Shown piece by piece: positions 7,282-58,007 of a DNA stretch of 64,000 nucleotides. Within the stretch, counting starts at the first letter, position 1; the number at the start of each line of letters is the position of its first letter. The DNA is taken from positions 55,984 through 119,983 of the forward strand of contig JAHDYR010000019.1 of the NCBI GenBank assembly GCA_019828565.1, written 5' to 3'. The notes beneath the pieces are model-generated. The model saw nothing but the letters and a program-made list of their open reading frames with translations, ran no database searches and was not told the origin of the DNA. This DNA is from Carpediemonas membranifera BICM. Its lineage: Eukaryota; Protista; Fornicata. The position numbers and the translations under genes are program-made.

Positions 7282-7300
7282 TAAGCAAAGTAATTACTTA

Positions 7301-7370
7301 TGCGGCGGCAAACGGAATTCTCTTTACATAAACTGCACTGACTCGAGCGCCGTCGTGTGTTACCACAACA
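7301..7370 (-). repeat. 5' LTR of B
   Basis: Identical to the 3' LTR; adjacent palindrome AAGTAATTACTT at 7288-7299. Confidence 0.96.
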
Positions 7371-7374
7371 GCTG

Positions 7375-7730
7375 CCGCGTAGCACAGAAGAGATCGCTAG
7401 CCTCGAGGAGTCCCACCACACACTGATAGAAGCAGCCCACAACGACGCAGTTGGCCGCCATGGCGTGCGCCGCACACTGCTGACTCTTCGAGCCGCCGGC
7501 CACAAGTGGCCTGGGATGCAAGCTGAGATCAAGAACTTCGTCTCTCAGTGCCTCAGCTGCCAGTTCAAGCGCAAAGCCGACACCAAGGTACCCTACCACA
7601 GTACTCAGCCCTCGAACCCCTTTGAGGTAATCTTTATTGACGCTCTTGGCCCCCTACCCGAGTCACACGATGGGTCAAAATACATCATCGCGGCTGTAGA
7701 TGGTTTTAGCAAGCACCTCTCGCTTTTCCT
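7375..7730 (+). pseudogene. pol: Element C integrase N-terminal fragment (duplicated at ~12996-13352)
   Basis: HNDAVGRHG...WPGM...CLSC, IDALGPLP, VDGFSK. Confidence 0.88.
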
Positions 7731-7762
7731 ACGGGAACACAGGGGGAGTCCATCCCCGCCGC

Positions 7763-8361
7763 TGTGCTCCTACTGGAGGAGGGAAAGAACTTTAATAAAG
7801 AGAAAACCCAATGGTTGCAAATATGGTGTAATCTACAAGTCATAAACTATGTAAGTATTGGGTAAGACCCACTACACTGCCCCTTCAGTGCCCAAATGGG
7901 CACGACCTCAAGCGGTGTGACTGTACGGCTAGTGAGGATTTGTCGAAGAGTCAACTGCTTTGTTCACGGTTGCCACGCCGCTCGCGCCGCCGTCCATCTC
8001 ATTGGCAGTGAGATGGGCTATGTCTGACCTTCTAGTCGGTGTCGCTACGCGCACTGACAATGTCTCAAATCTTTTCCTGAGATTCAAATATTTTGTGTGG
8101 TACCACTGGATAAATAGCGCGCTGATGTAAAATGGATCCTTACCGGGGACACTGCCCCTCCACGGCCAGTATAGGCCGTCAAATGAAACAAACCAGTTTG
8201 AAACAATCAAACGGTGCACCTTTGGGTCAAACGACCTTCGGTTTCGTATTTTGCCCAACATGGGGACTTCTTCGCGTTCATTACATAGTACTGTCGAAAT
8301 ATGGCCATTAGAGGCTTCAACGAGGCTTCGTTGTCGAGTTCTGGTGCTTTTTTCTTCACAG
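7763..8361 (-). mobile_element. 3' LTR (7763-7876, 114 bp) and 3' UTR of family D within duplication copy 1
   Basis: Same sequence as 13385-13984. Confidence 0.92.
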
Positions 8362-8714
8362 TGTGCTCGAGAGGACGGAAAAACAACTTGGTGCTTTAGT
8401 CAAAGAGAAGTCGACACAACAGTGTCGACCGGAATGGCGGATCGAATCGCCAATCAAATAAAATATTTGATTGGCACACTGCCACACTACCTCCCCAGAG
8501 GCGGAGCCCGAGACCTTCAAGAGCGGTCAAAGCTCATTTCCGCCTGGCGACAGGCGCACAGCGGGTCCTGCAGCAGGACACGGGCGGACATCTTGGCCGG
8601 GCACACCTTCCCTCAAGGCTCTGACGGGTGGGAGAGTAGAGACAACTTGTACTAGCACGGATCGTTTATTTGTTTGGGCAGGACGCTGAACCAATGTCCT
8701 GCCTTGACAGTAGC

Positions 8715-12621: not shown

Positions 12622-13984
12622 AGCTGCTTAAGCTGAGTTTTGAGGGCGCTCAAGCTCTTCGGCATGGACTCCTTCGTGAGGAAGTCGAAGACTTGTTCTT
12701 CGGAGAGATCTTCGGCTCTCTTGAGGCCGTAATGAATCTCAATCTCCTTTTGAAGGGAATCGCACAGTAGTAGAGCTATCTTGAAGTCAGGATGGCGCGT
12801 CTTAAAGACTCTCACTTCACGCTTGAAGGCACGAACGCGTTTTTGCGTAAGATCCTTTGCTTCGATGCTAGGGAATGAATAATCGATGCTCAAGCTTACC
12901 ATTAAGCAAAGTAATTACTTATGCGGCGGCAAACGGAATTCTCTTTACATAAACTGCACTGACTCGAGCGCCGTCGTGTGTTACCACAACAGCTGCCGCG
13001 TAGCACAGAAGAGATCGCTAGCCTCGAGGAGTCCCACCACACACTGATAGAAGCAGCCCACAACGACGCAGTTGGCCGCCATGGCGTGCGCCGCACACTG
13101 CTGACTCTTCGAGCCGCCGGCCACAAGTGGCCTGGGATGCAAGCTGAGATCAAGAACTTCGTCTCTCAGTGCCTCAGCTGCCAGTTCAAGCGCAAAGCCG
13201 ACACCAAGGTACCCTACCACAGTACTCAGCCCTCGAACCCCTTTGAGGTAATCTTTATTGACGCTCTTGGCCCCCTACCCGAGTCACACGATGGGTCAAA
13301 ATACATCATCGCGGCTGTAGATGGTTTTTAGCAAGCACCTCTCGCTTTTCCTACGGGAACACAGGGGGAGTCCATCCCCGCCGCTGTGCTCCTACTGGAG
13401 GAGGGAAAGAACTTTAATAAAGAGAAAACCCAATGGTTGCAAATATGGTGTAATCTACAAGTCATAAACTATGTAAGTATTGGGTAAGACCCACTACACT
13501 GCCCCCTTCAGTGCCCAAATGGGCACGACCTCAAGCGGTGTGACTGTACGGCTAGTGAGGATTTGTCGAAGAGTCAACTGCTTTGTTCACGGTTGCCACG
13601 CCGCTCGCGCCGCCGTCCATCTCATTGGCAGTGAGATGGGCTATGTCTGACCTTCTAGTCGGTGTCGCTACGCGCACTGACAATGTCTCAAATCTTTTCC
13701 TGAGATTCAAATATTTTGTGTGGTACCACTGGATAAATAGCGCGCTGATGTAAAATGGATCCTTACCGGGGACACTGCCCCTCCACGGCCAGTATAGGCC
13801 GTCAAATGAAACAAACCAGTTTGAAACAATCAAACGGTGCACCTTTGGGTCAAACGACCTTCGGTTTCGTATTTTGCCCAACATGGGGACTTCTTCGCGT
13901 TCATTACATAGTACTGTCGAAATATGGCCATTAGAGGCTTCAACGAGGCTTCGTTGTCGAGTTCTGGTGCTTTTTTCTTCACAG
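12622..13984. repeat. 1.36-kb direct duplication, copy 2 (B gag start, B LTR 12922-12991, C fragment, D LTR)
   Basis: Matches 7001-8361. Confidence 0.95.
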
Positions 13985-14138
13985 CCATTGCCGTCATCTG
14001 GTGCCTGCACCAATAACAATAACAACATCAAAATAGGTAATAAGGGGATAAATGGAGGTTATATGACGTTGTTTGGCAGCATTTTGGGGGAGTTTCGACG
14101 CGGAACTAAATTGTCAGATTTGGCATTTCGCTTTTCGC

Positions 14139-14879
14139 ATGCCAAAAGCGGGGGAAACGGTTTCTGCGTCGTCTATTGCCGATATCCGTTCGCAGCTCAT
14201 GGAGCTTGCTCCCGCTGAGCTTCAGGATCTTCTGGCCACGCTGCCTTCCGCTTCTTCTGCCGCTGCCGCTCCTTCTGGCGCGATCCGTAAGCGCGCTAGC
14301 CGCAAAACGGCCAAAAAGTAAGTAACAACATCAACCTAACGCTGATATAGCGCCACAATCACGACTGCCGTGCGCGAGAAGCTGTTGTCTTCTGTCCCCC
14401 TTGAGGGTTTTGAGTTACCGCCGTTCACCGAGTTCGACGGTGTGCTCACGCCGTTCGTCACTGAGCACGTCAACAACTACGTCAACTGGGTGGACTTCCC
14501 GTTTCAGTCGGTGTTTGACGCCATTGAGACTGGGGGGTTCGCCCAGTTTGACGTCGGTCCTCTGAAAACGCTGGCTCGACAGGTGCGCGACCTGCGCATT
14601 GACCACTCAGTCTTGAAGTCGATCGCGCTCTATTACAAGTTGGGTCCGGCTTCTGATCGTGACATCATGTCCCGCGCCTATGATGGCGACATGAGCATCA
14701 CCGGTACTGGAGCCTCCCATCGTTTGGTCAGCCCCGCACTGATTAAGTACCTCATGGGCGGACGGATTGGCGTCTCCGAGACTGAGCTTCGCTTGTCTCT
14801 CCACCGTCTGACCATTATGACCTTCGCCCCTGCCTACTACCGCCTCGTCGACGGTCTGCTGGAACTTGGCCTTGACTAG
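14139..14879 (+). CDS. Antisense accessory gene of D, C-terminally truncated, with a 33-nt intron 14318-14350 (second copy ~16569-17308)
   Basis: GTAAGT...CTAAC...TAG removal joins ORF 14139-14317 in frame with the ORF at 14370; shares motifs with antisense ORFs of G and H. Confidence 0.8.
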
Positions 14880-15797
14880 GGGAAGGTTAGCTGAGGAATG
14901 CATCTTCTGTAGTGAAAGAACGTAGAGGGGCTGTTTACCCCGGCAGAACTTCTCCAGGTGACCTTCCCGACCGCAGGCTGAACACTTATGCTTCGGGACT
15001 GGGCATTTGTGCCATGGGTGGCCCGACTTGCCACAGTTGAAACACGTGTAGGTGTCGAACTTCTTCTTGCGATCCGTGTGGTTGCGTGCGTCGAGTCGCT
15101 TCATGTCCTTCTTCGCTTCGGAATGTTGGTGGCTCTCATGGGTACCGTGGTTCAACGGTTGACTGTCACGTTTCGGCTTGTGTTGGTTAAAGCGTTGATG
15201 TTTGTTAGAGACAGGTTGATCGCCAAAGGCTTCGGTGATCTCCCTGCTCTCTTGAACATCGCGGCTCATGGCCAGGACCTTGGGCATGGCTTCGAGCAAC
15301 GCTTGGCCCTCGATCAGCTCTTTGACGCGGTACATTGTGCGGGAGCTAGAACCGAACTTGAAGCACCGCGCGTACGTCTCTCTCAGGACCTCTTCGGACG
15401 AGTCTGGCTGCACCACGGCTAAGAGCGTAGTGAACTTACGGTTGATCTTCACGACCTCGGCAGGGGAGAAGTTAGCGGCGCGCGCTCGGAACAGCTCTAG
15501 GCGCGCGATCTCCCTGGTGGGACGAAGTGTCCTACCCAAGCGTTTGACCACGAATAGGTCGCGAGCTTTGCGCTTCTGCTGAGATGCCTTCTTGACGATG
15601 AGAGGGACGCTCTCTTCGCCATCAGATTCGTCACCAATCGTGTCTGTGACGTAATCGCGAATGGTCTTATCCACAAGTAGATCAATGTCTTGTTTTCCGC
15701 CCAACGCCCGGTAGTCCGAGAGTTCGTCCACGAACTTGATCAACGCGGGCATCGTTGGAGCTTTCAACAACGGGGGAGTTACCTTTCTACTCTCCAT
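14876..15797 (-). CDS. gag: Gag of D unit 1 (two CCHC knuckles); reads across the deletion junction to 14607
   Basis: CFNCGKSGHPWHKC and CSACGREGHLEKFC; clearly similar to H gag. Confidence 0.9.
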
Positions 15798-17304
15798 AGG
15801 CTTGGATTAGATCTAATGTGCTCCTACTGGAGGAGGGAAAGAACTTTAATAAAGAGAAAACCCAATGGTTGCAAATATGGTGTAATCTACAAGTCATAAA
15901 CTATGTAAGTATTGGGTAAGACCCACTACACTGCCCCTTCAGTGCCCAAATGGGCACGACCTCAAGCGGTGTGACTGTACGGCTAGTGAGGATTTGTCGA
16001 AGAGTCAACTGCTTTGTTCACGGTTGCCACGCCGCTCGCGCCGCCGTCCATCTCATTGGCAGTGAGATGGGCTATGTCTGACCTTCTAGTCGGTGTCGCT
16101 ACGCGCACTGACAATGTCTCAAATCTTTTCCTGAGATTCAAATATTTTGTGTGGTACCACTGGATAAATAGCGCGCTGATGTAAAATGGATCCTTACCGG
16201 GGACACTGCCCCTCCACGGCCAGTATAGGCCGTCAAATGAAACAAACCAGTTTGAAACAATCAAACGGTGCACCTTTGGGTCAAACGACCTTCGGTTTCG
16301 TATTTTGCCCAACATGGGGACTTCTTCGCGTTCATTACATAGTACTGTCGAAATATGGCCATTAGAGGCTTCAACGAGGCTTCGTTGTCGAGTTCTGGTG
16401 CTTTTTCTTCACAGCCATTGCCGTCATCTGGTGCCTGCACCAATAACAATAACAACATCAAAATAGGTAATAAGGGGATAAATGTAGGTTATATGACGTT
16501 GTTTGGCAGCATTTTGGGGGAGTTTCGACGCGGAACTAAATTGTCAGATTTGGCATTTCGCTTTTCGCATGCCAAAAGCGGGGAAACGGTTTCTGCGTCG
16601 TCTATTGCCGATATCCGTTCGCAGCTCATGGAGCTTGCTCCCGCTGAGCTTCAGGATCTTCTGGCCACGCTGCCTTCCGCTTCTTCTGCCGCTGCCGCTC
16701 CTTCTGGCGCGATCCGTAAGCGCGCTAGCCGCAAAACGGCCAAAAAGTAAGTAAAAACATCAACCTAACGCTGATATAGCGCCACAATCACGACTGCCGT
16801 GCGCGAGAAGCTGTTGTCTTCTGTCCCCCTTGAGGGTTTTGGAGTTACCGCCGTTCACCGAGTTCGACGGTGTGCTCACGCCGTTCGTCACTGAGCACGT
16901 CAACAACTACGTCAACTGGGTGGACTTCCCGTTTCAGTCGGTGTTTGACGCCATTGAGACTGGGGGTTCGCCCAGTTTGACGTCGGTCCTCTGAAAACGC
17001 TGGCTCGACAGGTGCGCGACCTGCGCATTGACCACTCAGTCTTGAAGTCGATCGCGCTCTATTACAAGTTGGGTCCGGCTTCTGATCGTGACATCATGTC
17101 CCGCGCCTATGATGGCGACATGAGCATCACCGGTACTGGAGCCTCCCATCGTTTGGTCAGCCCCGCACTGATTAAGTACCTCATGGGCGGACGGATTGGC
17201 GTCTCCGAGACTGAGCTTCGCTTGTCTCTCCACCGTCTGACCATTATGACCTTCGCCCCTGCCTACTACCGCCTCGTCGACGGTCTGCTGGAACTTGGCC
17301 TTGA

Positions 17305-18226
17305 CTAGGGGAAGGTTAGCTGAGGAATGCATCTTCTGTAGTGAAAGAACGTAGAGGGGCTGTTTACCCCGGCAGAACTTCTCCAGGTGACCTTCCCGAC
17401 CGCAGGCTGAACACTTATGCTTCGGGACTGGGCATTTGTGCCATGGGTGGCCCGACTTGCCACAGTTGAAACACGTGTAGGTGTCGAACTTCTTCTTGCG
17501 ATCCGTGTGGTTGCGTGCGTCGAGTCGCTTCATGTCCTTCTTCGCTTCGGAATGTTGGTGGCTCTCATGGGTACCGTGGTTCAACGGTTGACTGTCACGT
17601 TTCGGCTTGTGTTGGTTAAAGCGTTGATGTTTGTTAGAGACAGGTTGATCGCCAAAGGCTTCGGTGATCTCCCTGCTCTCTTGAACATCGCGGCTCATGG
17701 CCAGGACCTTGGGCATGGCTTCGAGCAACGCTTGGCCCTCGATCAGCTCTTTGACGCGGTACATTGTGCGGGAGCTAGAACCGAACTTGAAGCACCGCGC
17801 GTACGTCTCTCTCAGGACCTCTTCGGACGAGTCTGGCTGCACCACGGCTAAGAGCGTAGTGAACTTACGGTTGATCTTCACGACCTCGGCAGGGGAGAAG
17901 TTAGCGGCGCGCGCTCGGAACAGCTCTAGGCGCGCGATCTCCCTGGTGGGACGAAGTGTCCTACCCAAGCGTTTGACCACGAATAGGTCGCGAGCTTTGC
18001 GCTTCTGCTGAGATGCCTTCTTGACGATGAGAGGGACGCTCTCTTCGCCATCAGATTCGTCACCAATCGTGTCTGTGACGTAATCGCGAATGGTCTTATC
18101 CACAAGTAGATCAATGTCTTGTTTTCCGCCCAACGCCCGGTAGTCCGAGAGTTCGTCCACGAACTTGATCAACGCGGGCATCGTTGGAGCTTTCAACAAC
18201 GGGGGAGTTACCTTTCTACTCTCCAT
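17305..18226 (-). CDS. gag: Gag of D unit 2
   Basis: Same translation as unit 1. Confidence 0.9.
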
Positions 18227-18363
18227 AGGCTTGGATTAGATCTAATGTGCTCCTACTGGAGGAGGGAAAGAACTTTAATAAAGAGAAAACCCAATGGTTG
18301 CAAATATGGTGTAATCTATAAGTCATAAACTATGTAAGTATTGGGTAAGACCCACTACACCGC

Positions 18364-18826
18364 CTTTGTTAACGATACAGGGACTCAGTGAAGTGTAGCG
18401 CGAGAGAACTGGGGTAAGGGGTAACAGGGACAACCGGGCCTAGCGCTTGGGGCTGCCGCTGACCCACGCCACCTAACCGGGGTAGACACCAGAGACTCGA
18501 CAACTTTCCCCGCCCTCGGGTTGGTCACTTAACAGGGCCGCAGGGGGCACGGATCCTCTGATCTGATCGGCTAGATGCCCTCACCTGGAGCCCCGGTGCG
18601 GACAGTTCGGGCACAAGTCCAACGAGTGCCCGCTGTAACAGGCTCCTAAGGTTTCATACATCCGAGTTCCACGGTGTGGAAAGAAAGGGCGACGATGGCA
18701 GGGTCAGAGGAGCTGTTCACGGACACGTACAGCGGGCCTACCACATTATCCCGCGGGATTGGGCTTCCGCACATGGGTCAGCTGTCCAGATGGGTCGGTT
18801 AGACTGACTTACCTTACCTTACTTAC
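18364..18826 (+). mobile_element. 3' end fragment of a LINE-like element with a (CTTAC)n tail; its 5' stub lies at ~13353-13384 and ~7731-7762
   Basis: Nucleotide similarity to the 3' UTR of the LINE at 56100-56300; tail CTTACCTTACCTTACTTAC 18808-18826; D is inserted in it. Confidence 0.72.
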
Positions 18827-18829
18827 AGG

Positions 18830-20099: not shown

Positions 20100-20238
20100 T
20101 GTCGTGGATCTTTAGATCCATGCATATATTTATTCCTGATCTGATTACGATCTGGTCTTGATTTGTCTTTTATTTTTAAACACTTCGCATTGTTCGTTGT
20201 TGTTCTACCCCCGCGCGCCTACAACAGTAATATTACTG

Positions 20239-21093: not shown

Positions 21094-21566
21094 TGTGGCG
21101 ACAACAGTATTTACACATAACCTGCGAAGCAGGGGTGAGTGTGCCCGTAATTATAAATAGCAATAATAATAACTGAGGCACTGACACTACCCCCCTCGAG
21201 CTGTAAGTGGGGCGTATGAATGGTGCCGAAGATATGTTTTGATGTCATCAAATCTTTCGGTCAGATCTCGAGGATATTCTCCACGATATTCGCCAGGAGT
21301 CTGGGTTCGAGTCCCGGGATGGTCACTTTTGTCGAACAGCGGATCAATTGATGAGCGAGTTGTTCGTGATGACGGTATGATGTCCAGAATGAGCCTGGTG
21401 TGTTCGAAACGCGAAGGATACTTGTTAGAAAGTCCTTCTTTCCCCCCTTTTCCTGCTATCGGTTCTCGATGAGGGAATGCATGATGTTCCTGTTCGAACT
21501 GCGTTCGTTCGGATGAATGTTTGTACAATAAGCAACATCAACATGAGATTAGGATGGGCTGATGTT

Positions 21567-24500
21567 CTATAGTCGCTTTTCCAGCTTTGAGCGCTCGTCG
21601 GGCGGTAGCGTCAACAAGTAACTGTCTAATGCGACGAGCTGGCGGTTCTCTGCATCTAGAGGTTCCCACGTAGCCTCTGAGCGTTCGAATCCTGCCCAGA
21701 GAATCTTGATCAGGCCTGGTTCCTTCCTCAGGTCGTGATCCAGGATGGCTTCGACGACAAGTTCGTCGTGATCCAGGGCCGCCATTTTGAGGGCCGCCTC
21801 TGGGCTGACGGGCGCTGCGATCATGCGCTCCCCGTGGATGTGGACCACCCTCTTCGTAATGAGGTCCTTCAGTCGGTAGACGTTGGGGTCTTCGCCACGA
21901 CCCAGGACCTTAAGTGGTCCCCGGAGGAAGGGTGAGAGCTTCTGGGGCTTCCTGCTCGGGATGATAAACGCAAACTCGTGCGGCTTCCACCTGTGGGTGG
22001 TCTTGAAGTGATCTCCCCGGCGCTTAGCCGCGTTGTACTCCTCCACAGCATGCTTGCTCAGTGCGCGGATGCGGCCGAGGGCCTCGATGTGACTGGCGAG
22101 AGCTGTAGATGCGCGCTCGGGGTCGGTGTAGCTGCGTGGGGTCTTCAAGTGTCGAGGGCTGATGCCCAGTAAGGCCTCGAGGGGTGATATTCCCCCAAGA
22201 GAGCGATGTGGAGCGGAGGACGAGGAATTGGGCCATATAAAGCCATCGTTGCCATTCGTTGGACTCTGCTTCCATCATGAGTTTGCGTAGAGCGCGCACG
22301 GCCGTGCCATTCGCTCGCTCAACTATACCCGAGCTCTGTGGATGGTAGGCTGTAGCAATGTGGTGCTTGAGGGTCAATTCACTCGTAAGCTTCTCCATAA
22401 GCTTGTTGCGGTACTGGGATCCTCCATCGGTGTGGATCTCCTGAGGAATGCCGAAGCGGCCAGCGAATGCGAGTAGGGCCTGTGCGGCTGAGTCTGCCGA
22501 CGTGTCCCGGACTGGAACTAGGTCGACGTACTTGGTAAAGGAGTCAATGATGGTGATGATATATCGATTGCCCCGAGTGGATTCGGGCAGGGGCCCGATC
22601 GTGTCCAGCTGGACTGTCTCGAACGGCTCTACCCTCTGCGTGCTATGCCACGCGGTCTGGCGCGCTTGGATCTGTCGAGTCTTCAGACATGTCGGACAGG
22701 TCCGAACGAAGGCGTCGATGTAGGGGTCAATGGTCTCGCGTTGAGCTGGCGTTGCCAGCCTGCGGATGATTCTGGCTGATGGGTGGCCGGCGGATCCTCC
22801 ATGAAGGGTCCGGAGGATGGCGCGGGCGTCTTCTGGTATGTCGTCAGTGGTCAGGAAGCAGCAGCGACTAAGAGCGTCTGCCACAGCGTTGTCCTCCCCT
22901 GCCACATGTGATATCTCCGCGGGGAACTGCTGGAGGGTGATCCTCCAGCGCATTACCTTCGGTGAGCAGTCCGAGCGCTTCATGAGGTAGACGATATTGC
23001 GATGGTCCGTGTGGACGTGTAGGTCCGTGGCCATGGTGAACAGGGGCTGCATGTCTGATCTGGTGAGTGCACTAAGGATACCATACAGTTCCTTATCATA
23101 GGTGCACCAGCGGCGTTGCACATCAGTTAGTCTCTTGGAGAATAACGTGACGGGCTGATGTTGGCCGTCCGCAGCGATCTGGTATAGAATACCGCCGACC
23201 GCGTTGTCGGACGCGTCTGTATAGAGATGCCAGGGTAGACCCGGGTCCGGCTGGGTGAGGGTGATGGCCTCCGCTGTGGCCTCCTTGAGGCTCTGGAGGG
23301 CCTGTTCTTGTGGATCACCCCACTCCTCGGCCTTGATTGCGTCATAGAGCGGGCCAAGAAGCTCCTGTGCGCGCGGAAGGTGCTCAGCGATGTAATTGAA
23401 CATGCCAGCGATGCGTCGCATGTCCTTGACAGAGGTGGGAGATGTGATGTCGTTGAGGGCCTTGGCTCTCTCGGGGTCCACGCTGCGACCTTGCTCCGAG
23501 ATGTCGAAGCCGACGACCTTGACCTTACGGGAGGCGAACTTGCACTTCGCGAGGTTAAGTCTCAAGTCATGGCGATCGAGTAGCACTAAGGTGTGCTCTA
23601 GCGTCTGGAGGAATTCCTCCTGTGTCTTTGCGTGGATGAGGATGTCATCAATGTAGACCATAACACCCTTGTGAAGCACGGGTGCGAGGACTCCTTGCAT
23701 GACTCTTTGGAAGTGAGACGGCGCATTTGCTAGGCCGAATGGCACCCGCACGAACTCGTCATACGCGTCTGGGGTGATCATAGCCGTCTTGCGGACGTCG
23801 TCCGGGTGGACTGGGACTTGATGATACCCGGACGTGAGGTCCAGCGCCGCGAAGAAGCGTGAGCCGGATGCTTCCCGCACAAACGACTTCAAGTCGGGGA
23901 GGGGGAAGTGGTCCTTGACTGTGATCCTATTGAGAGCTGTATAGTCAATACACAGTCTGATGGCGCCGGATGCCTTGTCTACGACGACAATGGGAGAGGC
24001 AAACGGTCCCTGTGAGGCCCGTGTGATACCTGCCGATCGCAGGCGCTGCAGCTCTTCTCTGACTTGCTCACGGCGTCTGGGATTGAGGCGGCGGGGCTTG
24101 GCTTGCACGAGGTGCTGTTCGTCCACTAGCGGGATGCGCATGGCGGGCACCTTGGCTCCTCCGGGCGCCAGGCCGTCAAAAACGTGAGGGTGCTGCACCA
24201 ATATCGCTGTGATCGGTTGCTTAAGCTCCTCGATCTCAATGTTGGGCTGTACGTCGTCGGTCAGCAGTAATTCTTCTGCTGGTCTGAAAGGAATATCGTC
24301 CCCTTCGTCTGCTGCGGTTTCTTTCACGAGCTTAACAAAAAGGCCATCGGAAGTGAGGCATCCGAGGCTTCTCAGAATATCGCAGCCTATGAGGATCAGG
24401 GGGTTTTTCCCTGGTATGATGTCGAGGTTGGCAGTGAAGCGGGTCTCGTGGCCAGCTAGGGCCACTCGGAGGTCCGCGGAGGTCCGGCCATTAGCGGTGG

Positions 24501-24699
24501 CCACTGACTGGTCTGCCAGTAAATAATGCCGCGTAGGGCCCGTTGAATGGGGTAGGGCGAGATCCTTTGCTAGTCCCTCCGAAACTCCTGAACGTCTGGC
24601 GCATGAATCAATGTGGAACACGTACTCTTGGCCATTTATATGGCCCGTAGTCTTGAGCACGTCGTCCTCGGTGTCGATCTCGGCATCGTCAAGGATCAT
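21567..24699 (-). CDS. pol: pol of I (PR-RT-RH-INT-chromodomain), one frameshift near 22150-22210
   Basis: IDSCA protease, YIDD, YTDAS, CPTC, TDGGSQY, chromo ELVVEAIL...ILWAGF...TWEP. Confidence 0.93.
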
Positions 24700-25591: not shown

Positions 25592-25710
25592 GAGTCTGTA
25601 CTAGAATCGATTCTGTGGCGACAACAGTATTTACACATAACCTGCGAAGCAGGGGTGAGTGTGCCCGTAATTATAAATAGCAATAATAATAACTGAGGCA
25701 CTGACAATGT

Positions 25711-35947: not shown

Positions 35948-36049
35948 CGGGAAAGTACTAGTACTGTAGTCTTGGAAGAGATAGGTTTTACAAGTAAAAA
36001 GAGGTTTGGACCATCCCGGGGATATTGGTAGATATTAATATTGACTACA

Positions 36050-46947: not shown

Positions 46948-47045
46948 TGTGAGCAGTTTAGGGTACCAACTACACGTGCGAACCCTATAAACAGTTTGTT
47001 TTGAAACCTTTAACCTCGACAAGATCACAGTGTACACTCATCTAA

Positions 47046-50000
47046 TGTCCGACTACATACCAAGACCTTTCTTACTAACACTAGAAGAACAGGCGTTCAC
47101 CAAGTTCCGATCGTCCTACCGTGCGTACCGAGCTCAACGCCTTGACGATCCTCTTCTCCATCCGACTGCCCTGATGGATCCTACGCCTCTTCTTCTCATC
47201 ACACGCCGTCTCAACGACAATCCGGCCGATCTTCCGGCGGATACTGTCTTGGACACAGTCTACCAAACATTCTATAGCCCCCGCAGTAACGTTCAAGCAC
47301 TAGCCAAGCTGAAGTCGCTGCGGTGCGCCCGAACGGGCCCCTTATCAACGCCTGCACAGCTTCTCAACCATATCGAACGCTTCGAAACTATCCGGAGCTC
47401 GTTCACAGCCGACGTCACACCACCAGAGAAGCTAATGGTGAAGGCATACCTGCAGGCACTTCCAGATCCTCTTGCGGAGCGTATCCGCATGGAGCAGCCA
47501 GATGACGTCGCAGAGGCGCAGGACCACGCCATTGATGAACTGGAGGAACTCCTTAACCTCCAGTCGCTCCTGCAGCCGGAACCGGCCCAGCCAGCTGGTA
47601 AGCGCCCGACTCCCGGCGCCGCCGCTGGGGCTAGACTACCCCAACGATCGTCTGCCCCTGCCACGGCTGTGGCCATACGGGCCACATCCGCCCCAACTGT
47701 CCCTATCAAGGACACAGAGATTTCTTCCGCTCTGGCGTGCGCAAGACTCCCATCCAGGGTCCGCCAGTCAAGCGCGAAAAGGCGAATCTGGCCGCCACTG
47801 ATCACGACGGCCTCATCTGTCGCCAAGCCACTCTCTATGTTCCCATCAACGAGAGTACTGCCACAGAGGTCTGTGCAGTACTTGATACTGGTGCAACTAT
47901 TGACCTCATCTCCCCCACGATAGCCGAATCATTTATCCAACGTGGCGCTCTTCCAGCCGTCGCTAACGTTCGTTTGGATACCGCGAACGGTCCAGTTTTC
48001 ATCAAGAGAGCTGTGTTCCTTGCCATGCTCATTGATGGCGTTCGCTCCATTCGGCCATTCTACATCCTCCCCTCTATGTCGGAGGATCTGATCCTCTCAA
48101 ACTCCACTATCCAAGATCTCTCCCTCTCCTTGGCCCCCAACGGCCGATGAGGAGACGATCGATGAGGATCACGCACCCGTCACTCGCCTAGATGAAGGAG
48201 AGCAGCTCCCTGACGTAGGTTCAACCGCGTCTGCCCTCCCGCCAGCCATCAGAGCCGTCTATGATGAGTATGCCGAAGTCTTCACCAGCCGTCCCCACCC
48301 AGACGGAGCAGACGTTCCCCCTATGGAGATAGAGCTGCTTGAGGGCGCCACACCGGCTGCTCAACCGCCGCGTCGTCTATCCCCTGCAATCCAGCAGGAG
48401 GTTGATGACCAGGTGAACGAGCTCCTTGCTCAAGGAATCGTCCGCCCCTCACGCTCTCCCTGGGCTGCACCCGTCTTTACTGTCCCCAAAAAGGGCGGTG
48501 CCCGCCGCCTCGTCGTGGACTACCGTCAGGCGAATGATCGCATCAAGCAAGTCAGTTTCCCACTTGCACACCAAGAAGAGCTGATGTCGCATCTCGCAGG
48601 CCAACGTTGCTTTGCGACGTTAGATCTCGTTAGTGGATACCACAAGATCCCACTGTCCGAAAGTTCCATTCCGATAACCGCGTTTTCAACTCCAACCGGC
48701 CTTTATGAGTATACGCGCGTTCCATTTGGCGTCAAAACGGCTCCTGCTACCTTCCAGGCCATCATGACCCAATTGCTCTCCAAGTTTGTCGGAACTACGT
48801 GCGAGGTCTTCATAGACGACATCATCATTCACGCATCAACCACGGACGAACTAGCTACACGCCTAGCTGAGATCCTTGCCGTTCTCAAGGAACATCGCTT
48901 CGTCCTTCATCCCAGCAAGTGCTGTCTGTACGCTGAGCAGGTGGAATACCTCGGCCATATCATCTCCCCCGAGGGAATCCGCATGTCCCCCGCCCGGGTC
49001 AAGGCCGTTCAGGCCATGGCTCCTCCTAAGGACATCAAGACCACGCGGGCCTTCTGTGGAGCGATGAATTATTTCCGTAGGTTCATCCCCAACCTCAGCT
49101 CGATCCTACAGCCACTATACGCCCCTCACCTCTGGGAAGGTCCGGTGGAAATGGACAAAGGAGGCCCAGACTGCTTTCGAAGAGAGCAAGAACCTCGCCG
49201 CCCACACGCCGTGTTTAGCCTTCCTGGACTACTCTGCCCCAATTATCGTTCGCACCGATGCTAGCGACATTGGCTGTGGAGGCGTGCTCCTCAACGTCAA
49301 GGATGGCGTTGAACACGTAGTCTCCTACTGTAGCCACGCATTCACCACCGCAGAGCGCAACTGGGCTGTCATCGAAAAGGAAGCCTTCGGCATCTTCTTC
49401 GCGGTTGTCGAGAAGTACTCCCCCTATCTCCTCGGCCACTCGTTCGCTATACAGACAGACCACCGTAACCTAGTTTATATGCGCCGTTCTACCACACCCA
49501 AGGTCGTCCGCTGGAACCTCAGACTCCAAGAGTTCGACTTTGTCGTTGAACACATCTCTGGCGTCTCCAACACCCTCACTGATGGCATATCCAGGTGCTT
49601 CATCGTCCAACCCCCGAGAATGCCCCTACACTCCAGCGACTTATCATAGCCTCTGTCCACAATGCCGTCGAGGGACACCTCGGCCGAGAGGCTACACTCC
49701 GCCTCCTTAAGGAACGAAACCTTGACTTCCGTGGAATGAGCAACGCTGTCGCCGAGTATATCAAGGCTTGCCCGATATGTCAGAAGAACGCCAGACTTCC
49801 CAAGCGCCTTCAGACAGGCCTCCGCCCTACCATGGGCGTCACCCCACGCTCCTGCTGGGCGTTTGATACGGTCGGGCCTTATCCTGCAGACTCCAACGGA
49901 TGCCGCTACGTTATCACCTTCATTGACACCTTCACACGCTTCGTAGAGCTGGTCCCATGCAAGGATGCTTCTTCTGCAGAGGCCCTTCGCGCTCTTATCT

Positions 50001-50881
50001 CCGTCACGGGACGCTACGGTACTCCGTCTTCTTTCCGAAGTGATCGCGGTTCTCAGTACCTTGCCACCGCTTTCCAACAGCTCATTAAGCTCTTCGGCGC
50101 CCAACACGTTGTCTCTCTTCCATACCACCCCAGAGCCAACGGGCTCGTCGAAAGAGCTAACGCCGAGCTCTCACGACACCTACGTACCATCACTCAGGAG
50201 CTGCGCGACGTTAACAACTGGTCCCTTTACCTCCCAGTCGTCCAGCGGATCATGAACACCACGATATGTGCCACCACGGGCATTGCCCCCGCACAGCTCA
50301 TGTTCGCTTCACAGAACGTCACCCCCTTCCTGTCGTCCGACGCCCACGTTGAGGAGGAGAAGAGTGAATACGGCCGCTTCTTTAGCCGTGTTCTCCAGGC
50401 CCAGCCCAAGCTCATTGAGACAGCACGCCAGCACCAAGAGAACGTCCTCTCGAAACGTCCGGCTTTCGGCGACGAGCCCCTTCCTATTGGCTCGAAGGTG
50501 CTTGTCACGCGCCCTTCGAAGCGCCCCACCAAGCTGTCTACTAAGCTCGTTGGCCCATACACGATCACTGACCGCGAGCACGACATCTACACCGTACACA
50601 ACCCCACTGCCGGCGCCACCTTCCAGTATCACGGTTCCCGGCTCGTGGAGTACGACGACTCCCTGGCCTTCGATGACATCACCGTCGCCTCCCTTGACGA
50701 CGACACCTACGAAGTCGAGGCCATCACCCGCCACCGTGGTGGCCCCACGAAGTCTACCCTCGAATTCCTCGTCGCCTGGGATGGCTACCCAGGCGCCGAT
50801 GAGTGGCTCCCGTACCACGAGGTCCGCGACCTCGAAGCCCTCGACATTTATGCCGAGGCTCACCCGGAGCTGCACCTTTAG
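47046..50881 (+). pseudogene. gag-pol: gag-pol of J unit 1 (several frameshifts)
   Basis: Knuckle CHGCGHTGHIRPNC, LDTGA, FIDD, RTDAS, CPIC, SDRGSQY, chromo YEVEAI...FLVAWDGY. Confidence 0.93.
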
Positions 50882-50987
50882 AGGGGAAGTGTGAGCAGTT
50901 TAGGGTACCAACTACACGTGCGAACCCTATAAACAGTTTGTTTTGAAACCTTTAACCTCGACAAGATCACAGTGTACACTCATCTAA

Positions 50988-53900
50988 TGTCCGACTACAT
51001 ACCAAGACCTTTCTTACTAACACTAGAAGAACAGGCGTTCACCAAGTTCCGATCGTCCTACCGTGCGTACCGAGCTCAACGCCTTGACGATCCTCTTCTC
51101 CATCCGACTGCCCTGATGGATCCTACGCCTCTTCTTCTCATCACACGCCGTCTCAACGACAATCCGGCCGATCTTCCGGCGGATACTGTCTTGGACACAG
51201 TCTACCAAACATTCTATAGCCCCCGCAGTAACGTTCAAGCACTAGCCAAGCTGAAGTCGCTGCGGTGCGCCCGAACGGGCCCCTTATCAACGCCTGCACA
51301 GCTTCTCAACCATATCGAACGCTTCGAAACTATCCGGAGCTCGTTCACAGCCGACGTCACACCACCAGAGAAGCTAATGGTGAAGGCATACCTGCAGGCA
51401 CTTCCAGATCCTCTTGCGGAGCGTATCCGCATGGAGCAGCCAGATGACGTCGCAGAGGCGCAGGACCACGCCATTGATGAACTGGAGGAACTCCTTAACC
51501 TCCAGTCGCTCCTGCAGCCGGAACCGGCCCAGCCAGCTGGTAAGCGCCCGACTCCCGGCGCCGCCGCTGGGGCTAGACTACCCCAACGATCGTCTGCCCC
51601 TGCCACGGCTGTGGCCATACGGGCCACATCCGCCCCAACTGTCCCTATCAAGGACACAGAGATTTCTTCCGCTCTGGCGTGCGCAAGACTCCCATCCAGG
51701 GTCCGCCAGTCAAGCGCGAAAAGGCGAATCTGGCCGCCACTGATCACGACGGCCTCATCTGTCGCCAAGCCACTCTCTATGTTCCCATCAACGAGAGTAC
51801 TGCCACAGAGGTCTGTGCAGTACTTGATACTGGTGCAACTATTGACCTCATCTCCCCCACGATAGCCGAATCATTTATCCAACGTGGCGCTCTTCCAGCC
51901 GTCGCTAACGTTCGTTTGGATACCGCGAACGGTCCAGTTTTCATCAAGAGAGCTGTGTTCCTTGCCATGCTCATTGATGGCGTTCGCTCCATTCGGCCAT
52001 TCTACATCCTCCCCTCTATGTCGGAGGATCTGATCCTCTCAAACTCCACTATCCAAGATCTCTCCCTCTCCTTGGCCCCCAACGGCCGATGAGGAGACGA
52101 TCGATGAGGATCACGCACCCGTCACTCGCCTAGATGAAGGAGAGCAGCTCCCTGACGTAGGTTCAACCGCGTCTGCCCTCCCGCCAGCCATCAGAGCCGT
52201 CTATGATGAGTATGCCGAAGTCTTCACCAGCCGTCCCCACCCAGACGGAGCAGACGTTCCCCCTATGGAGATAGAGCTGCTTGAGGGCGCCACACCGGCT
52301 GCTCAACCGCCGCGTCGTCTATCCCCTGCAATCCAGCAGGAGGTTGATGACCAGGTGAACGAGCTCCTTGCTCAAGGAATCGTCCGCCCCTCACGCTCTC
52401 CCTGGGCTGCACCCGTCTTTACTGTCCCCAAAAAGGGCGGTGCCCGCCGCCTCGTCGTGGACTACCGTCAGGCGAATGATCGCATCAAGCAAGTCAGTTT
52501 CCCACTTGCACACCAAGAAGAGCTGATGTCGCATCTCGCAGGCCAACGTTGCTTTGCGACGTTAGATCTCGTTAGTGGATACCACAAGATCCCACTGTCC
52601 GAAAGTTCCATTCCGATAACCGCGTTTTCAACTCCAACCGGCCTTTATGAGTATACGCGCGTTCCATTTGGCGTCAAAACGGCTCCTGCTACCTTCCAGG
52701 CCATCATGACCCAATTGCTCTCCAAGTTTGTCGGAACTACGTGCGAGGTCTTCATAGACGACATCATCATTCACGCATCAACCACGGACGAACTAGCTAC
52801 ACGCCTAGCTGAGATCCTTGCCGTTCTCAAGGAACATCGCTTCGTCCTTCATCCCAGCAAGTGCTGTCTGTACGCTGAGCAGGTGGAATACCTCGGCCAT
52901 ATCATCTCCCCCGAGGGAATCCGCATGTCCCCCGCCCGGGTCAAGGCCGTTCAGGCCATGGCTCCTCCTAAGGACATCAAGACCACGCGGGCCTTCTGTG
53001 GAGCGATGAATTATTTCCGTAGGTTCATCCCCAACCTCAGCTCGATCCTACAGCCACTATACGCCCTCACCTCTGGGAAGGTCCGGTGGAAATGGACAAA
53101 GGAGGCCCAGACTGCTTTCGAAGAGAGCAAGAACCTCGCCGCCCACACGCCGTGTTTAGCCTTCCTGGACTACTCTGCCCCAATTATCGTTCGCACCGAT
53201 GCTAGCGACATTGGCTGTGGAGGCGTGCTCCTCAACGTCAAGGATGGCGTTGAACACGTAGTCTCCCTACTGTAGCCACGCATTCACCACCGCAGAGCGC
53301 AACTGGGCTGTCATCGAAAAGGAAGCCTTCGGCATCTTCTTCGCGGTTGTCGAGAAGTACTCCCCCTATCTCCTCGGCCACTCGTTCGCTATACAGACAG
53401 ACCACCGTAACCTAGTTTATATGCGCCGTTCTACCACACCCAAGGTCGTCCGCTGGAACCTCAGACTCCAAGAGTTCGACTTTGTCGTTGAACACATCTC
53501 TGGCGTCTCCAACACCCTCACTGATGGCATATCCAGGTGCTTCATCGTCCAACCCCCGAGAATGCCCCTACACTCCAGCGACTTATCATAGCCTCTGTCC
53601 ACAATGCCGTCGAGGGACACCTCGGCCGAGAGGCTACACTCCGCCTCCTTAAGGAACGAAACCTTGACTTCCGTGGAATGAGCAACGCTGTCGCCGAGTA
53701 TATCAAGGCTTGCCCGATATGTCAGAAGAACGCCAGACTTCCCAAGCGCCTTCAGACAGGCCTCCGCCCTACCATGGGCGTCACCCCACGCTCCTGCTGG
53801 GCGTTTGATACGGTCGGGCCTTATCCTGCAGACTCCAACGGATGCCGCTACGTTATCACCTTCATTGACACCTTCACACGCTTCGTAGAGCTGGTCCCAT

Positions 53901-54823
53901 GCAAGGATGCTTCTTCTGCAGAGGCCCTTCGCGCTCTTATCTCCGTCACGGGACGCTACGGTACTCCGTCTTCTTTCCGAAGTGATCGCGGTTCTCAGTA
54001 CCTTGCCACCGCTTTCCAACAGCTCATTAAGCTCTTCGGCGCCCAACACGTTGTCTCTCTTCCATACCACCCCAGAGCCAACGGGCTCGTCGAAAGAGCT
54101 AACGCCGAGCTCTCACGACACCTACGTACCATCACTCAGGAGCTGCGCGACGTTAACAACTGGTCCCTTTACCTCCCAGTCGTCCAGCGGATCATGAACA
54201 CCACGATATGTGCCACCACGGGCATTGCCCCCGCACAGCTCATGTTCGCTTCACAGAACGTCACCCCCTTCCTGTCGTCCGACGCCCACGTTGAGGAGGA
54301 GAAGAGTGAATACGGCCGCTTCTTTAGCCGTGTTCTCCAGGCCCAGCCCAAGCTCATTGAGACAGCACGCCAGCACCAAGAGAACGTCCTCTCGAAACGT
54401 CCGGCTTTCGGCGACGAGCCCCTTCCTATTGGCTCGAAGGTGCTTGTCACGCGCCCTTCGAAGCGCCCCACCAAGCTGTCTACTAAGCTCGTTGGCCCAT
54501 ACACGATCACTGACCGCGAGCACGACATCTACACCGTACACAACCCCACTGCCGGCGCCACCTTCCAGTATCACGGTTCCCGGCTCGTGGAGTACGACGA
54601 CTCCCTGGCCTTCGATGACATCACCGTCGCCTCCCTTGACGACGACACCTACGAAGTCGAGGCCATCACCCGCCACCGTGGTGGCCCCACGAAGTCTACC
54701 CTCGAATTCCTCGTCGCCTGGGATGGCTACCCAGGCGCCGATGAGTGGCTCCCGTACCACGAGGTCCGCGACCTCGAAGCCCTCGACATTTATGCCGAGG
54801 CTCACCCGGAGCTGCACCTTTAG
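50988..54823 (+). pseudogene. gag-pol: gag-pol of J unit 2
   Basis: Near-identical to unit 1; the differences seen are homopolymer indels. Confidence 0.93.
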
Positions 54824-54917
54824 AGGGGAAGTGTGAGCAGTTTAGGGTACCAACTACACGTGCGAACCCTATAAACAGTTTGTTTTGAAACCTTTAACCT
54901 CGACAAGATCACAACAG

Positions 54918-55800
54918 GCTCAAAGCCATCATACCCAAGTCTGGGACACTCACATCAGGAACATCAACCCCGGACTTTGCAGTGACAACACCAGGAATCC
55001 AGGGGGCGGAGATTGAGGTGGTAGAGTCTCAGAAGGTCGGGGTATGGGGCTCAGCACACAATGGAATCACACTAGCATGGAAGGAACAACGGTACTATGG
55101 CAGAAGTGAGCGAGACGTGGCTCTGGCCATACCCGAGGTGCACACCTGGCCCATGAAAAAGAAGGAGGGGCCAGTCACAGTCTCAAAGCTGAACAGGATC
55201 AAGAGCTCGGACCAATGGGAAGAGACTATAAGAGCATGCATGGGCGACCCAGTGAACAACAGGGGAGCAAAGGCAAGGGACAAAGTGTTCGGGAACGGAG
55301 TGTGGAGCGAACTCCAGCGAACCCCATGGACAGAAATAGGCAACAGGACCTATGAGAGCCATCACAGAGCTGGCCCAAGGCGCTGACCTGAAGAGAGAAA
55401 TTAGCAGACTATGCCCCCTATGCTCGGAGGAGTCGGAGGTGAGCCTGTTCTACAGGATCATTAGGGAAAAGCCAGGACCAGCAAGGAAGCAGGAAATGAT
55501 CAGGGGAGTGGGCAGAGGGCCAGAGGCTAGGATCGGCAGCGCACATAATCTGTGAATGCCCGGCAGTAGACAGGGGAGAAGCTTGGACAAAGCTGTGGAC
55601 AGCAGCGAAGCACAAAACTAAGGACTTGGAAGTAAGGCAGGGCCCCCAGGGCGAATGGTACCAGGAAAGACCCATCCTAGAATTACAGCAACTAATAATA
55701 TGGGGCTCGGAGGACATTTGGGAAGGCCTCACGGCAGGACTACGGGAACTGGCAAAGGTTTACAACAGCTTCAAGGTGGAATAGAAGCATGTCATGAACC
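54918..55800 (+). pseudogene. LINE ORF2 remainder: APE C-terminus joined to C-terminal Cys/His domain, RT missing
   Basis: TPDFAV...SAH (SDH-like), then CPLC...HIICEC within ~0.6 kb; no YADD or other RT motif found. Confidence 0.75.
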
Positions 55801-56697
55801 CCTGACTCCAGGACCGGGAAGGGATGGACAAGGAATCAGCCATGGACCACCCTCGCTGGTGCTAAGCTCCTGGGATCAGTGAGGAAAGGCCCCACGTATC
55901 CCGGTAGCCAGGAACCAAAGCAAGGGAAGGAACGACTGCAAGGAAATAACAGGAAGGACAGACCAGAAATAAGAAAGAAAGGACATGCGACAAGGACAGA
56001 GCAAGGATAAGGTCAAGGAAATCCATATTCATATGGTTGCACCACTCGTTGGGACCCCAAGGAAACTGCAGGGACTGGCCACGGGGGTCGGAGGGGCACA
56101 GGTGCCCCTGCCGCCCTTGTTAACGACATGGGAAACCAAGGACATGTAGTGCAAGCGAAATGTTGTAAGGGGTAACAGGACAACCAGGCCTAGTGCCTGG
56201 GGCTGCCGCTGACCCACGCCACCTAACCGGGGTAGACAGCATGGACTTAGTCACTTTCCCCGCCTTCGGGTAGGCTTCTTAACAGAGTCGAGGGGGCATG
56301 GAATTGGGGAACCGGACAGACGAGAGGGTGCCGTGGCTGAACGGCTCTGCAAGGACTGCAGGGAAGCAAGGAGTGTCATAGTCAAGGTTCTGCAGGACGA
56401 TCCTGCCTGTCAATGCCCCGAGGACAGACCCCCAGGCTCCCCGGATAGTTGCCGGACTTTCAGGGAGACAGGAAAGCATATTTGCACGGAGATGGCCGCA
56501 GGGCCTCTGGGGCGATTGGAATCGGCTTTCCGCGGAGACAGTAGCACCGAAAGCCCAAGGCAAACGCTGCTGACCAGTTTGCCACGGGAAATAGGCAGTA
56601 CCCCGGGGCACTCAGCTCCAAGACAACGGGAAACAAGCTCAGTCCGGGGTCAGAATCCAAGCACCATAAATTTCTTTCTTTCTGGTGTCGAGTAGAA

Positions 56698-57859
56698 GTA
56701 GCTCGGCGTTAAATGTACAAGTGCGCGGGGTGAACGATGATGGTTGCAGCTTAATCGTAGCGTTGACTCGACCCTGTGACTGTTTCTCGCCGCCTGCTGT
56801 TGCGACACGCTCCTGCGTGGTGGAGATGACCTCGAGCTTGGCTGCGTGGCGAGGGTGGATGCTTGACACGTTAGCTCCCGAGTCTAATAACGCTGTCAGC
56901 TTCTGCTTGCCTACTGAAACCGGAACGAGTGGTAGGTTGATCTTGGACTTGGACTGATCTGCACTGATAGAGAGAGAATATTGCGGAGATTTATCCCGAC
57001 AATATCTCTCCAGGTGACCAGTCTTCTTGCAGATCGAGCACGTGTGCTTCGGCTTGGGGCACTTGTGCCATGCGTGCTTGCCGCCGCAGTTCCAGCAGGT
57101 GTAGTCGCGCTTCTTGTCAGTGCTACTGGGATGGGGCTTACGCTCTGACTTATCCCGGTTCAGCGTCTTGTTGCTTCCCTCCTCAGACGGCAGCGGCTGG
57201 CGATAAGGATGGCCGTTGCGGCCTGCTCTCTTTCTGTTACCGCTAGGATGGCCGCCTGTCGGGTGAATGCTCTTGGGGTGCTTCTGTCCGTCTCCTAGGT
57301 ACGCTTCTCTCAGCTCTTCGCCGTCCCGCAGCTCGGTGCTAATGGCGAGTACCTGAGGCATGGCATCACTCAGAGTGGAATCTTCGATCAACTCTTGAAT
57401 GCGGTACATAGTTCTGCCTGTTCCCTGCTTGAAGCAGCGGGCGTACGTCTTACACAGTGTCTCCTGTGATGACTCGGGTTGCAGAATAGCCAGCAATGTC
57501 TGAAAGCGCTTGTTGATGCGTACCACCTCGCTAGGCGTGAAGGATGTGGCGTTCAAGCGGAAGTATTCAAGCCTTGCTACCTCGTGGCGTGGTCTAAAGG
57601 CCTTGCCGAGACGCTTGACACAAGCGATGTCTTGTTCGCGCCGGCGTGTAGTCTTGGTCTTGATGAGCGCCACGGGAGGATCGTTGTCGTCCGTGCCGAG
57701 TACTCCGTCAACGTAGTCACGGACGCAGCTGTCTATTAGGCGGTCTGAGCGCTGTTTTCCGCCGAGTGCTCGATAATCTTGGAGCGCTTCCACGAACGTG
57801 ACTAATTCAGCCACGGACGTGCCCTTTAGTATCGGCGCTTTGGCCTTCCCGTATACCAT
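56698..57859 (-). CDS. gag: Gag-protease N-part of H
   Basis: CWNCGGKHAWHKC, CSICKKTGHLERYC, LLDSGA; the frame continues (LLDTDFDLILG) at 41997. Confidence 0.93.
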
Positions 57860-58007
57860 GTTGGTGGGATTAGTACTAATGTAGCCTTATGGCTAGGGAA
57901 AGATTGTTTAATATAAGAAAACCCATGATGTGGTGAATATGGTCAATACTATATAAATCTATGAAATGGTAATCCTATGTAACATTGGGTAAGACCCACT
58001 GCACCGC

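Follow-up and report, generated by a model that had tools for sequence, protein, structure and literature searches.

Palindromes in place of the tRNA primer-binding site in gypsy elements of Carpediemonas membranifera: a candidate site for self-priming between two RNAs

Priming is a defining step of every retroelement, and few solutions to it are known. In the Tf1/sushi group of Ty3/gypsy elements (Tf1, Tf2, Maggy, Skippy, Cft-1, and the Tcn1 clade), the minus strand is primed by RNA of the element itself. In Tf1, the element's RNase H frees the primer by cutting an 11-bp RNA-RNA duplex that forms where U5 of the long terminal repeat (LTR) ends. Here, we describe LTR retrotransposons in a 64,000-nt stretch of DNA from the free-living metamonad Carpediemonas membranifera BICM (contig JAHDYR010000019.1, positions 55,984-119,983; hereafter, the window), in which a perfect palindrome stands where the primer-binding site (PBS) for a host transfer RNA (tRNA) would be expected. 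Like the Tf1/sushi elements, these belong to Ty3/gypsy, carry an integrase (IN) chromodomain, and have no tRNA-complementary PBS. However, Tf1 self-priming, summarized in PMC5445492 and PMC5006619, uses two cis elements, the first 11 nt of the transcript and a PBS complementary to them, whereas the site described here is complementary only to itself.

Three other systems invite comparison. The fungal Copia element GalEa has no PBS; instead, a 9-bp sequence is palindromic together with the final A of the 5' LTR, a complementary box lies 12-41 bp downstream, there is no Tf1-type complement, and the mechanism was left open (Donnart et al. 2017, PMC5445492). The C. membranifera elements share this geometry, in that the sequence after the 5' LTR becomes palindromic once the LTR-final A is counted (ACTGATCAGT or ACTAATTAGT in GalEa). 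In contrast, GalEa is a Copia element of 5.4-7 kb with IN before reverse transcriptase (RT), while RT precedes IN here; its CHSeq2 is complementary to the first segment with a fixed A/A mismatch, while no such box occurs in the 90 nt downstream of 47 sites here; and its sequence comes in essentially two variants, whereas at least 33 occur here. Skipper elements, chromoviruses of dictyostelids (PMC5006619), are likewise protist elements that have lost the TGG of a PBS and have no LTR complement, but a polypyrimidine stretch follows their LTR instead of a palindrome. Finally, short palindromes pair two genomic RNAs at the retroviral dimer initiation site (DIS) and the Ty1 PAL sequence (PMC5454406, PMC4974528), but there the palindrome is located in a hairpin loop or at some other place in the leader and accompanies a tRNA PBS, whereas here it stands at the PBS position itself.

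The window is eukaryotic DNA of 55% G+C, and a nest of LTR retrotransposons occupies most of it. One of its pol ORFs matches an annotated C. membranifera protein at 100% identity. Pfam matches give the domain order gag-protease (PR)-RT-RNase H (RH)-IN, often with a C-terminal chromodomain (PF00385; 7.7e-10 in family G, 5e-9 in family H, weakly in families F and J, and in many relatives as well), and the top match among solved structures is the Ty3 Gag-Pol polyprotein (E 3e-79). A polypurine tract of the type GAGGGG(N)AG directly precedes every 3' LTR. The elements are thus Ty3/gypsy, as an earlier note on this DNA had said from the sequence alone, and chromovirus-like; of the features that mark membership only the tRNA PBS is absent. 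A bacterial or synthetic construct, suggested by restriction-site-like palindromes and many 100% identical repeats, is ruled out by the Pfam gag-PR-RT-RH-IN domains and by LTRs with target site duplications (TSDs).

We set the LTR ends with no regard to the palindromes, through a self-comparison of the window and by comparing 5' with 3' copies and their flanks. The seven families (B, D, F, G, H, I, and J; Table 1) have LTRs with TG..CA ends, and six of them (B, D, F, H, I, and J) are flanked by 4-bp TSDs. These are young copies, to judge by the 98-100% identity within LTR pairs and by the intact open reading frames (ORFs) of several elements. Their LTRs, of 70-127 nt, are much shorter than is usual in gypsy elements; those of the relatives described below measure 80-180 nt. 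Standard LTR finders at default minimum lengths would probably miss such elements.

All ten palindromes that the earlier note had listed in these families are perfect and stand at the coordinates it gave. The palindrome starts at the last A of the LTR in D, H, I, G, and J and at the terminal CA in F. In B, the perfect 12-mer starts 1 nt past the LTR, and one bulged T extends the pairing over the LTR-terminal GCA (GCA-T-AAGTAATTACTT-TGC). The gag ATG follows the palindrome by 0-11 nt, and the palindrome fills an LTR-to-ATG interval of 12-25 nt. No palindrome follows a 3' LTR; the third J LTR is adjoined by flanking sequence instead. As the earlier note had also observed, no TGG or tRNA-type PBS is present in the first nucleotides after any 5' LTR of the seven families. 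At the base composition of the window, a 12-nt palindrome is expected at a fixed position with a chance of about 2.7e-4 (about 1 in 3,700), or about 1e-3 if a few offsets are allowed. Given this per-site expectation, palindromes in seven of seven families are not due to chance. Across the window, palindromes of at least 12 nt number 28 against about 16 expected, and nine of the 28 are the sites described here.

Table 1. Palindromes, LTRs, and coding regions of the seven retrotransposon families (window coordinates)
Feature	Sequence	Position	Strand	Remarks
B palindrome	AAGTAATTACTT	7288-7299	-	PBS position, adjoins 5' LTR
B palindrome, second copy		12909-12920	-	beside B-type 5' LTR 12922-12991, within segmental duplication 12622-13984
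D palindrome	ATTAGATCTAAT	15806-15817	-	overlaps terminal A of LTR 15817-15930
D palindrome, second array unit		18235-18246	-	terminal A of LTR 18246-18359
F palindrome	CAGTAATATTACTG	20225-20238	+	overlaps terminal CA of 5' LTR; ATG directly after
I palindrome	AGAATCGATTCT	25603-25614	-	overlaps terminal A of 5' LTR
G palindrome	AGTACTAGTACT	35954-35965	-	overlaps terminal A of 5' LTR
J palindrome	AGTGTACACT	47029-47038	+	overlaps terminal A of LTR 46948-47029
J palindrome, second unit		50971-50980	+	LTR 50890-50971
H palindrome	ATTAGTACTAAT	57869-57880	-	overlaps terminal A of 5' LTR
B LTRs		5' 7301-7370; 3' 2954-3023	-	70 nt, TG..CA; TSD CAGC
B coding regions		gag 6373-7281; PR 5563-6339; RT-RH 4329-5582; IN 3026-4219	-	
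D LTRs		15817-15930; 18246-18359	-	114 nt; four copies; TSD GCGG
D gags		14607-15797; 17036-18226	-	
F LTRs		5' 20100-20226; 3' 29173-29299	+	127 nt; TSD ACAG(A); 3' LTR duplicate 36731-36857
I LTRs		5' 25614-25706; 3' 21094-21186	-	93 nt; TSD ACAT
I coding regions		gag 24728-25591; pol 22024-24699	-	complete element, nested in F
G 5' LTR		35965-36049	-	about 85 nt; no 3' LTR seen
G polyprotein		31926-35510	-	zinc knuckle, PR, RT, RH, IN, chromodomain
J LTRs		46948-47029; 50890-50971; 54832-54913	+	82 nt; three copies; TSD ACAG
H LTRs		5' 57880-58003; 3' 37005-37128	-	124 nt; TSD GCGG
H coding regions		gag-PR 56639-57859; RT 40975-41967; RH-IN-chromodomain 39240-41075	-	

For minus-strand synthesis, a primer has to pair no more than a few nucleotides from U5, and the palindrome touches or overlaps the LTR-terminal CA, the place for the 3' end of such a primer. 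Because of this, and because nothing else lies between U5 and the start of gag, the palindrome is our candidate for the minus-strand primer-binding site, independent of host tRNA and with a partner RNA as primer. We place about half of our confidence in this reading as a whole, and its parts differ in strength. The sequence comparisons lend good support to a self-complementary, tRNA-independent primer site that would pair in trans. The primer for reverse transcription is probably the element's own RNA. That the partner RNA would be cleaved and then act as primer is plausible by analogy, has precedent, and is the best supported of the mechanisms considered.

The arrangement extends well beyond the window. 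A second C. membranifera locus (contig JAHDYR010000002.1) carries AGTGAATTCACT, and at least eight different palindromes coexist in this one host genome. Proteins 33-43% identical to the window pol led to contigs of assembly GCA_002919055.1 and to metagenomes with the same arrangement and other palindromes (e.g., AATTTCGAAATT, AGAAACGTTTCT, AGTGTACACT, CAGTTCGCGAACTG, and AATATTAATATT). A scan of metagenome contigs by pol alignment gave 80 related loci at 27-51% identity. For these, we used a strand-mirror control, in which chance predicts equal sense and mirror counts. Palindromes of at least 12 nt set in AC|A...T number 46 on the pol-sense strand and four as the mirror (A...T|GT), an orientation-specific enrichment. 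In 46 loci, such a palindrome stands within about 100 nt ahead of the long gag or polyprotein ORF, and inspection found about 12 further loci with a palindrome, some offset by 0-2 nt. Where a 5' LTR end could be defined independently, from two LTR copies in different flanks, it carries a palindrome in 12 of 12 cases (six window families plus L008, L015, L016, L039, L062, and L072). Automatic LTR pairs that arose from assembly overlaps or circular permutations, as in many metagenome contigs, were left out of this definition.

The curated set comprises 33 distinct palindromes of 10-18 nt, mostly 12 nt, with 21% G+C. Their half-sites prefer A-R-T-R-W-W, and C is absent at positions 2-4. Some sites vary in placement: in L042, L045, and L048, 10-nt palindromes (TTGATATCAA or TTGAATTCAA) begin just past CACA instead of on the A and lie about 45 nt upstream of gag, and the L028 palindrome (54-65) is offset by 2 nt. 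In a maximum-likelihood tree of RT-RNase H, the carriers fall in a single clade of 77 rows with support of 99 in the Shimodaira-Hasegawa-like approximate likelihood ratio test (SH-aLRT); the tree comes from a quick search with no bootstrap, and its outgroups are six plant, insect, fish, and apicomplexan reference proteins. A palindrome is recorded in 67 of the 77 rows; 15 of the 67 were added by eye, and four of these 15 are doubtful. The remaining 10 rows adjoin carriers on the tree, and most come from contigs with a missing 5' end. None is recorded in the nine metagenome loci outside the clade or in the six reference rows, the screen for palindromes having covered the metagenome loci only, as the references are protein sequences. 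Identical palindromes recur in distant branches of the tree. Together, the carriers make up a large clade of miniature-LTR gypsy elements, apparently not described before. Outside C. membranifera, the closest relatives (L010-L023, L025, L028, L029, L031, and L071) are PPCM01 contigs of GCA_002919055.1 with 52-60% G+C, and this assembly may hold a Carpediemonas-like protist.

What does the palindrome pair with? At least eight sister pairs (L056/L066, L015/L017, L042/L045, L011/L012, L033/L035, L038/L062, L040/L050, and D/H) differ only at mirrored positions. The double changes between relatives include AAATATATATTT/AAATACGTATTT, AAAGTAATTACTTT/AAAGTATATACTTT, TTGATATCAA/TTGAATTCAA, AGAATCGATTCT/AGAAACGTTTCT, AGTGAATTCACT/AGTGACGTCACT, AATAGTCGACTATT/AATAATCGATTATT, AATAATTAATTATT/AATATTTAAATATT, and, for D/H, ATTAGATCTAAT/ATTAGTACTAAT. 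Such mirrored double changes are, at the level of sequence, the signature of base pairing between the palindrome halves. Because lengths vary from 10 to 18 nt, and because a formal pair count on a fixed structure would be circular for sites selected as palindromes, we relied on the strand-mirror control and on the independently defined LTR ends. The paired changes had been noticed in the window before, and the central AT-to-TA swap between D and H is real. F and G, which had been offered as a second sister pair, are not sisters: their pol proteins are 34% identical, against 49% for G and H, and the D gag is closest to the H gag, at 43%.

No other partner came to light. In the seven families, the longest exact match of the reverse-complemented site within the LTR is 4-6 nt (shuffle P 0.3-1.0), which bears out the earlier failure to see a Tf1-type complement. 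For 47 nonredundant sites, match lengths in the 90 nt upstream and downstream follow the shuffled distribution. There is also no loop, since the central 2-4 nt are symmetric in 33 of 33 distinct palindromes. Predicted energies favor the annealing of two RNAs that had been suggested: the palindrome alone gives 0 to -2.6 kcal/mol as a hairpin and -10.8 to -16.6 kcal/mol as a homoduplex, and in 40-nt contexts dimerization gains -11 to -16 kcal/mol, where shuffled sequences give about -7 +/- 3. The mirrored changes, the missing loop, and the missing partner together point to pairing between two molecules.

A contiguous perfect palindrome cannot, on structural grounds, sit in a tRNA cloverleaf. For this reason, and because the palindromes are family specific with at least eight in one host, the element's own RNA is the only primer candidate in view. 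Two copackaged genomic RNAs would pair through their palindromes into an A/U-rich RNA homoduplex of 10-18 bp. One strand would be cleaved at the palindrome's 3' border or close to it, the most plausible enzyme being the RT-RNase H that the element itself encodes (as in Tf1), and the freed 3'-OH, paired at the U5 border of the partner, would prime minus-strand strong-stop DNA. Plus-strand strong-stop DNA would then copy the primer palindrome, providing homology for the second strand transfer. One cis element would serve as primer, primer-binding site, and dimer linkage. Since plus-strand synthesis would copy the primer's palindrome, any mutation at position k would be mirrored at n+1-k in the progeny heteroduplex, which would be a quick route to compensated double changes and gives a testable prediction for paralogous copies.

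With confidence a little short of even, we propose in broader terms a third mode of minus-strand priming beside tRNA and Tf1 fold-back. This would be a symmetric, dimer-dependent self-priming in which each packaged RNA may prime the other, a palindrome of 10-18 nt has a triple role, and mutations are copied in mirror image. It would define an unrecognized protist clade of miniature-LTR gypsy elements and may have arisen independently in GalEa.

Several points weigh against self-priming through the palindrome. R and U5 are assumed to lie within the LTRs of 70-127 nt. Sequence alone does not define where the cut would fall, as the palindrome extends into U5 by 1-4 nt depending on the family, and no conserved cleavage motif follows the palindrome, where there is a mild A/AG preference alone. 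If the whole 5' fragment (R-U5-palindrome) were the primer, it would need trimming, as plus-strand strong-stop DNA would otherwise run into it. The duplexes are short and A/U-rich (21% GC). At one relative, L087 (557-578), the presumed site is a 9-bp stem starting from ACA with a nonsymmetric 4-nt loop, at an LTR end that is not fixed. The exclusion of a tRNA primer rests on the absence of TGG and on the structural argument above, the tRNA gene search having covered the window and 30 related loci.

The palindrome could instead be a dimerization or packaging signal only, a linear equivalent of the retroviral DIS, with some other molecule as primer. Family-specific self-complementarity and a favorable homoduplex are what such a signal would show, and the retroviral DIS and Ty1 PAL are themselves palindromic (PMC5454406, PMC4974528). 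However, there is no space for a second primer site: the palindrome overlaps the LTR end and fills the 12-25 nt before gag, no TGG or tRNA-like site is present, and neither the LTR nor the downstream sequence holds a complement. Known DIS palindromes are displayed in hairpin loops and are additional to a PBS (PMC5445492), whereas these lie at the U5 border with no separate PBS, and dimer folds pair them as a linear duplex. We regard this account as unlikely, though deserving of attention.

Another candidate is a dyad-symmetric DNA site for a dimeric protein of the host or the element, maybe controlling transcription from the 5' LTR only. The perfect Watson-Crick symmetry without G-T positions would fit such a site, as would the shared half-site preference and the recurrence of the same palindromes in distant branches. 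But the 33 sequences, at least eight of them in one genome, and their mirrored double changes point to base pairing rather than protein contact, and their lengths vary over 10-18 nt with central insertions. Anchoring on the LTR-terminal CA fits the geometry of priming, not of a promoter, and a DNA site would leave the element without a primer site. We consider this improbable.

A little less probable still is self-priming in cis through a hairpin, in which a nick would give a 3' end on the same molecule, as has been loosely proposed for the GalEa Conserved Hairpin Site. CHSeq1 and CHSeq2 of GalEa, the closest published analogue, are drawn as a hairpin (PMC5445492), and the stem and loop of L087 stand at its presumed site. 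However, no second complementary segment occurs in the 90 nt downstream, the hairpin is worth 0 to -2.6 kcal/mol, and the center is symmetric in every one of the 33 palindromes even though a loop could vary freely.

Priming by a host tRNA, a tRNA half, or another small RNA that matches the site is the default in Ty3/gypsy, and internal tRNA regions serve some Copia elements (PMC6317226), but it is very improbable here, as no TGG follows any LTR, no tRNA gene or Rfam family was found in the window, and a matching tRNA would itself need a contiguous perfect palindrome of 10-18 nt, a distinct one for each of at least eight families. The only tRNA found in the 30 related loci, a tRNA-Val beside L062, is uninformative. 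Equally hard to credit is classical Tf1-type self-priming, in which 5' bases of the transcript within the LTR would fold back on the site: self-priming is common in the Tf1/sushi and Tcn1 groups (PMC6317226) and these are chromodomain gypsy elements, but the LTR matches of 4-6 nt in seven families are no better than shuffles, and the 47 sites agree.

As a self-complementary site for pairing in trans, the arrangement would be a new form of tRNA-independent priming, lacking the feature that defines Tf1 and two of the three GalEa features. Full-text literature searches returned neither a description of these Carpediemonas elements nor one of a palindromic primer site in Ty3/gypsy. The earlier note had known of no description of any such system, and this stands for Ty3/gypsy; more widely it does not, as the GalEa palindrome was published in 2017 (PMC5445492) and Tf1 priming in trans is on record, judging by the title of Haag, Lin & Levin (2000) as cited in PMC7235257.

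The nest offers further observations on the anatomy of these elements. D is a 2.4-kb nonautonomous element with a gag ORF only (396 amino acids; 43% identical to the H gag). Its LTR resembles that of H in parts, at 83-87% identity, and it retains a palindrome of its own, which differs from that of H by the central AT-to-TA swap. Each of the seven LTRs has an A/T-rich patch that holds a [G/T]TAAA motif, 16-47 nt upstream of the LTR end (e.g., GTAAAG in B, ATAAAC in J, GTAAAT in I, TTAAAG in D, and TTAAAC in H and F). This could be a promoter or initiator, or a poly(A) signal; either way, R and U5 would span only a few tens of nucleotides. A small U5 hairpin precedes the terminal ACA in H (TAGCC-ATAA-GGCTA, 57881-57900, minus strand) and D (CTCC-AGTA-GGAG, 15818-15840, minus strand); it recalls the U5 stem beside retroviral and Tf1 primer sites, and the other families show no obvious counterpart.

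Tandem arrays of the form LTR-internal-LTR-internal-LTR occur in J (46948-54913, TSD ACAG) and D (13385-18359, TSD GCGG), each flanked by a single TSD, and several metagenome relatives (e.g., L060 and L012) also appear tandem or circularly permuted. Candidate origins are unequal exchange between LTRs of 82-114 nt, integration of concatemers, and assembly collapse. A segmental duplication of 1363 nt (12622-13984 = 7001-8361, 99.85% identical) contains the D LTR with the adjoining 3' internal part, an antisense fragment of an older element's integrase, and a B-type 5' LTR with the B palindrome and the first ~94 codons of the B gag. The result is a chimeric unit (12991->7763) whose 5' LTR is B-type and whose 3' LTR is D-type, with an interior unlike B at the DNA level.

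The 3' end of F and its flank are also duplicated; the 21-kb H element, with its nested insertions, splits one of the two copies and leaves the other uninterrupted. The uninterrupted copy at 29300-30375 is an empty-site paralogue of the H insertion (compare 36858-37004 and 58004-58936), which therefore confirms the ends of H and its GCGG TSD and places the insertion after the duplication. B, D, and F are inserted in the integrase-coding parts of older elements (7371-7762, 12992-13384, and 20080-20099/29300-29330). Two of these insertions lie near the D..FSK motif, which may reflect chance in the nest or a target preference. A CEP76-like host gene (60197-62998, minus strand), with C2, EF-hand, and CEP76 peptidase-like domains, borders the nest.

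Because C. membranifera is culturable and carries young, intact copies, direct testing is feasible. The palindromes provide a clade-wide, statistically unambiguous sequence signature for a further solution to priming, one simple enough for LTR annotation tools, which now score such elements as PBS-less. If self-priming through the palindrome is true, it would tie RNA dimerization directly to the initiation of DNA synthesis. It would also explain how an element can do without host tRNA and spread across very different hosts, and it would offer an explanation for the Conserved Hairpin Site of GalEa.

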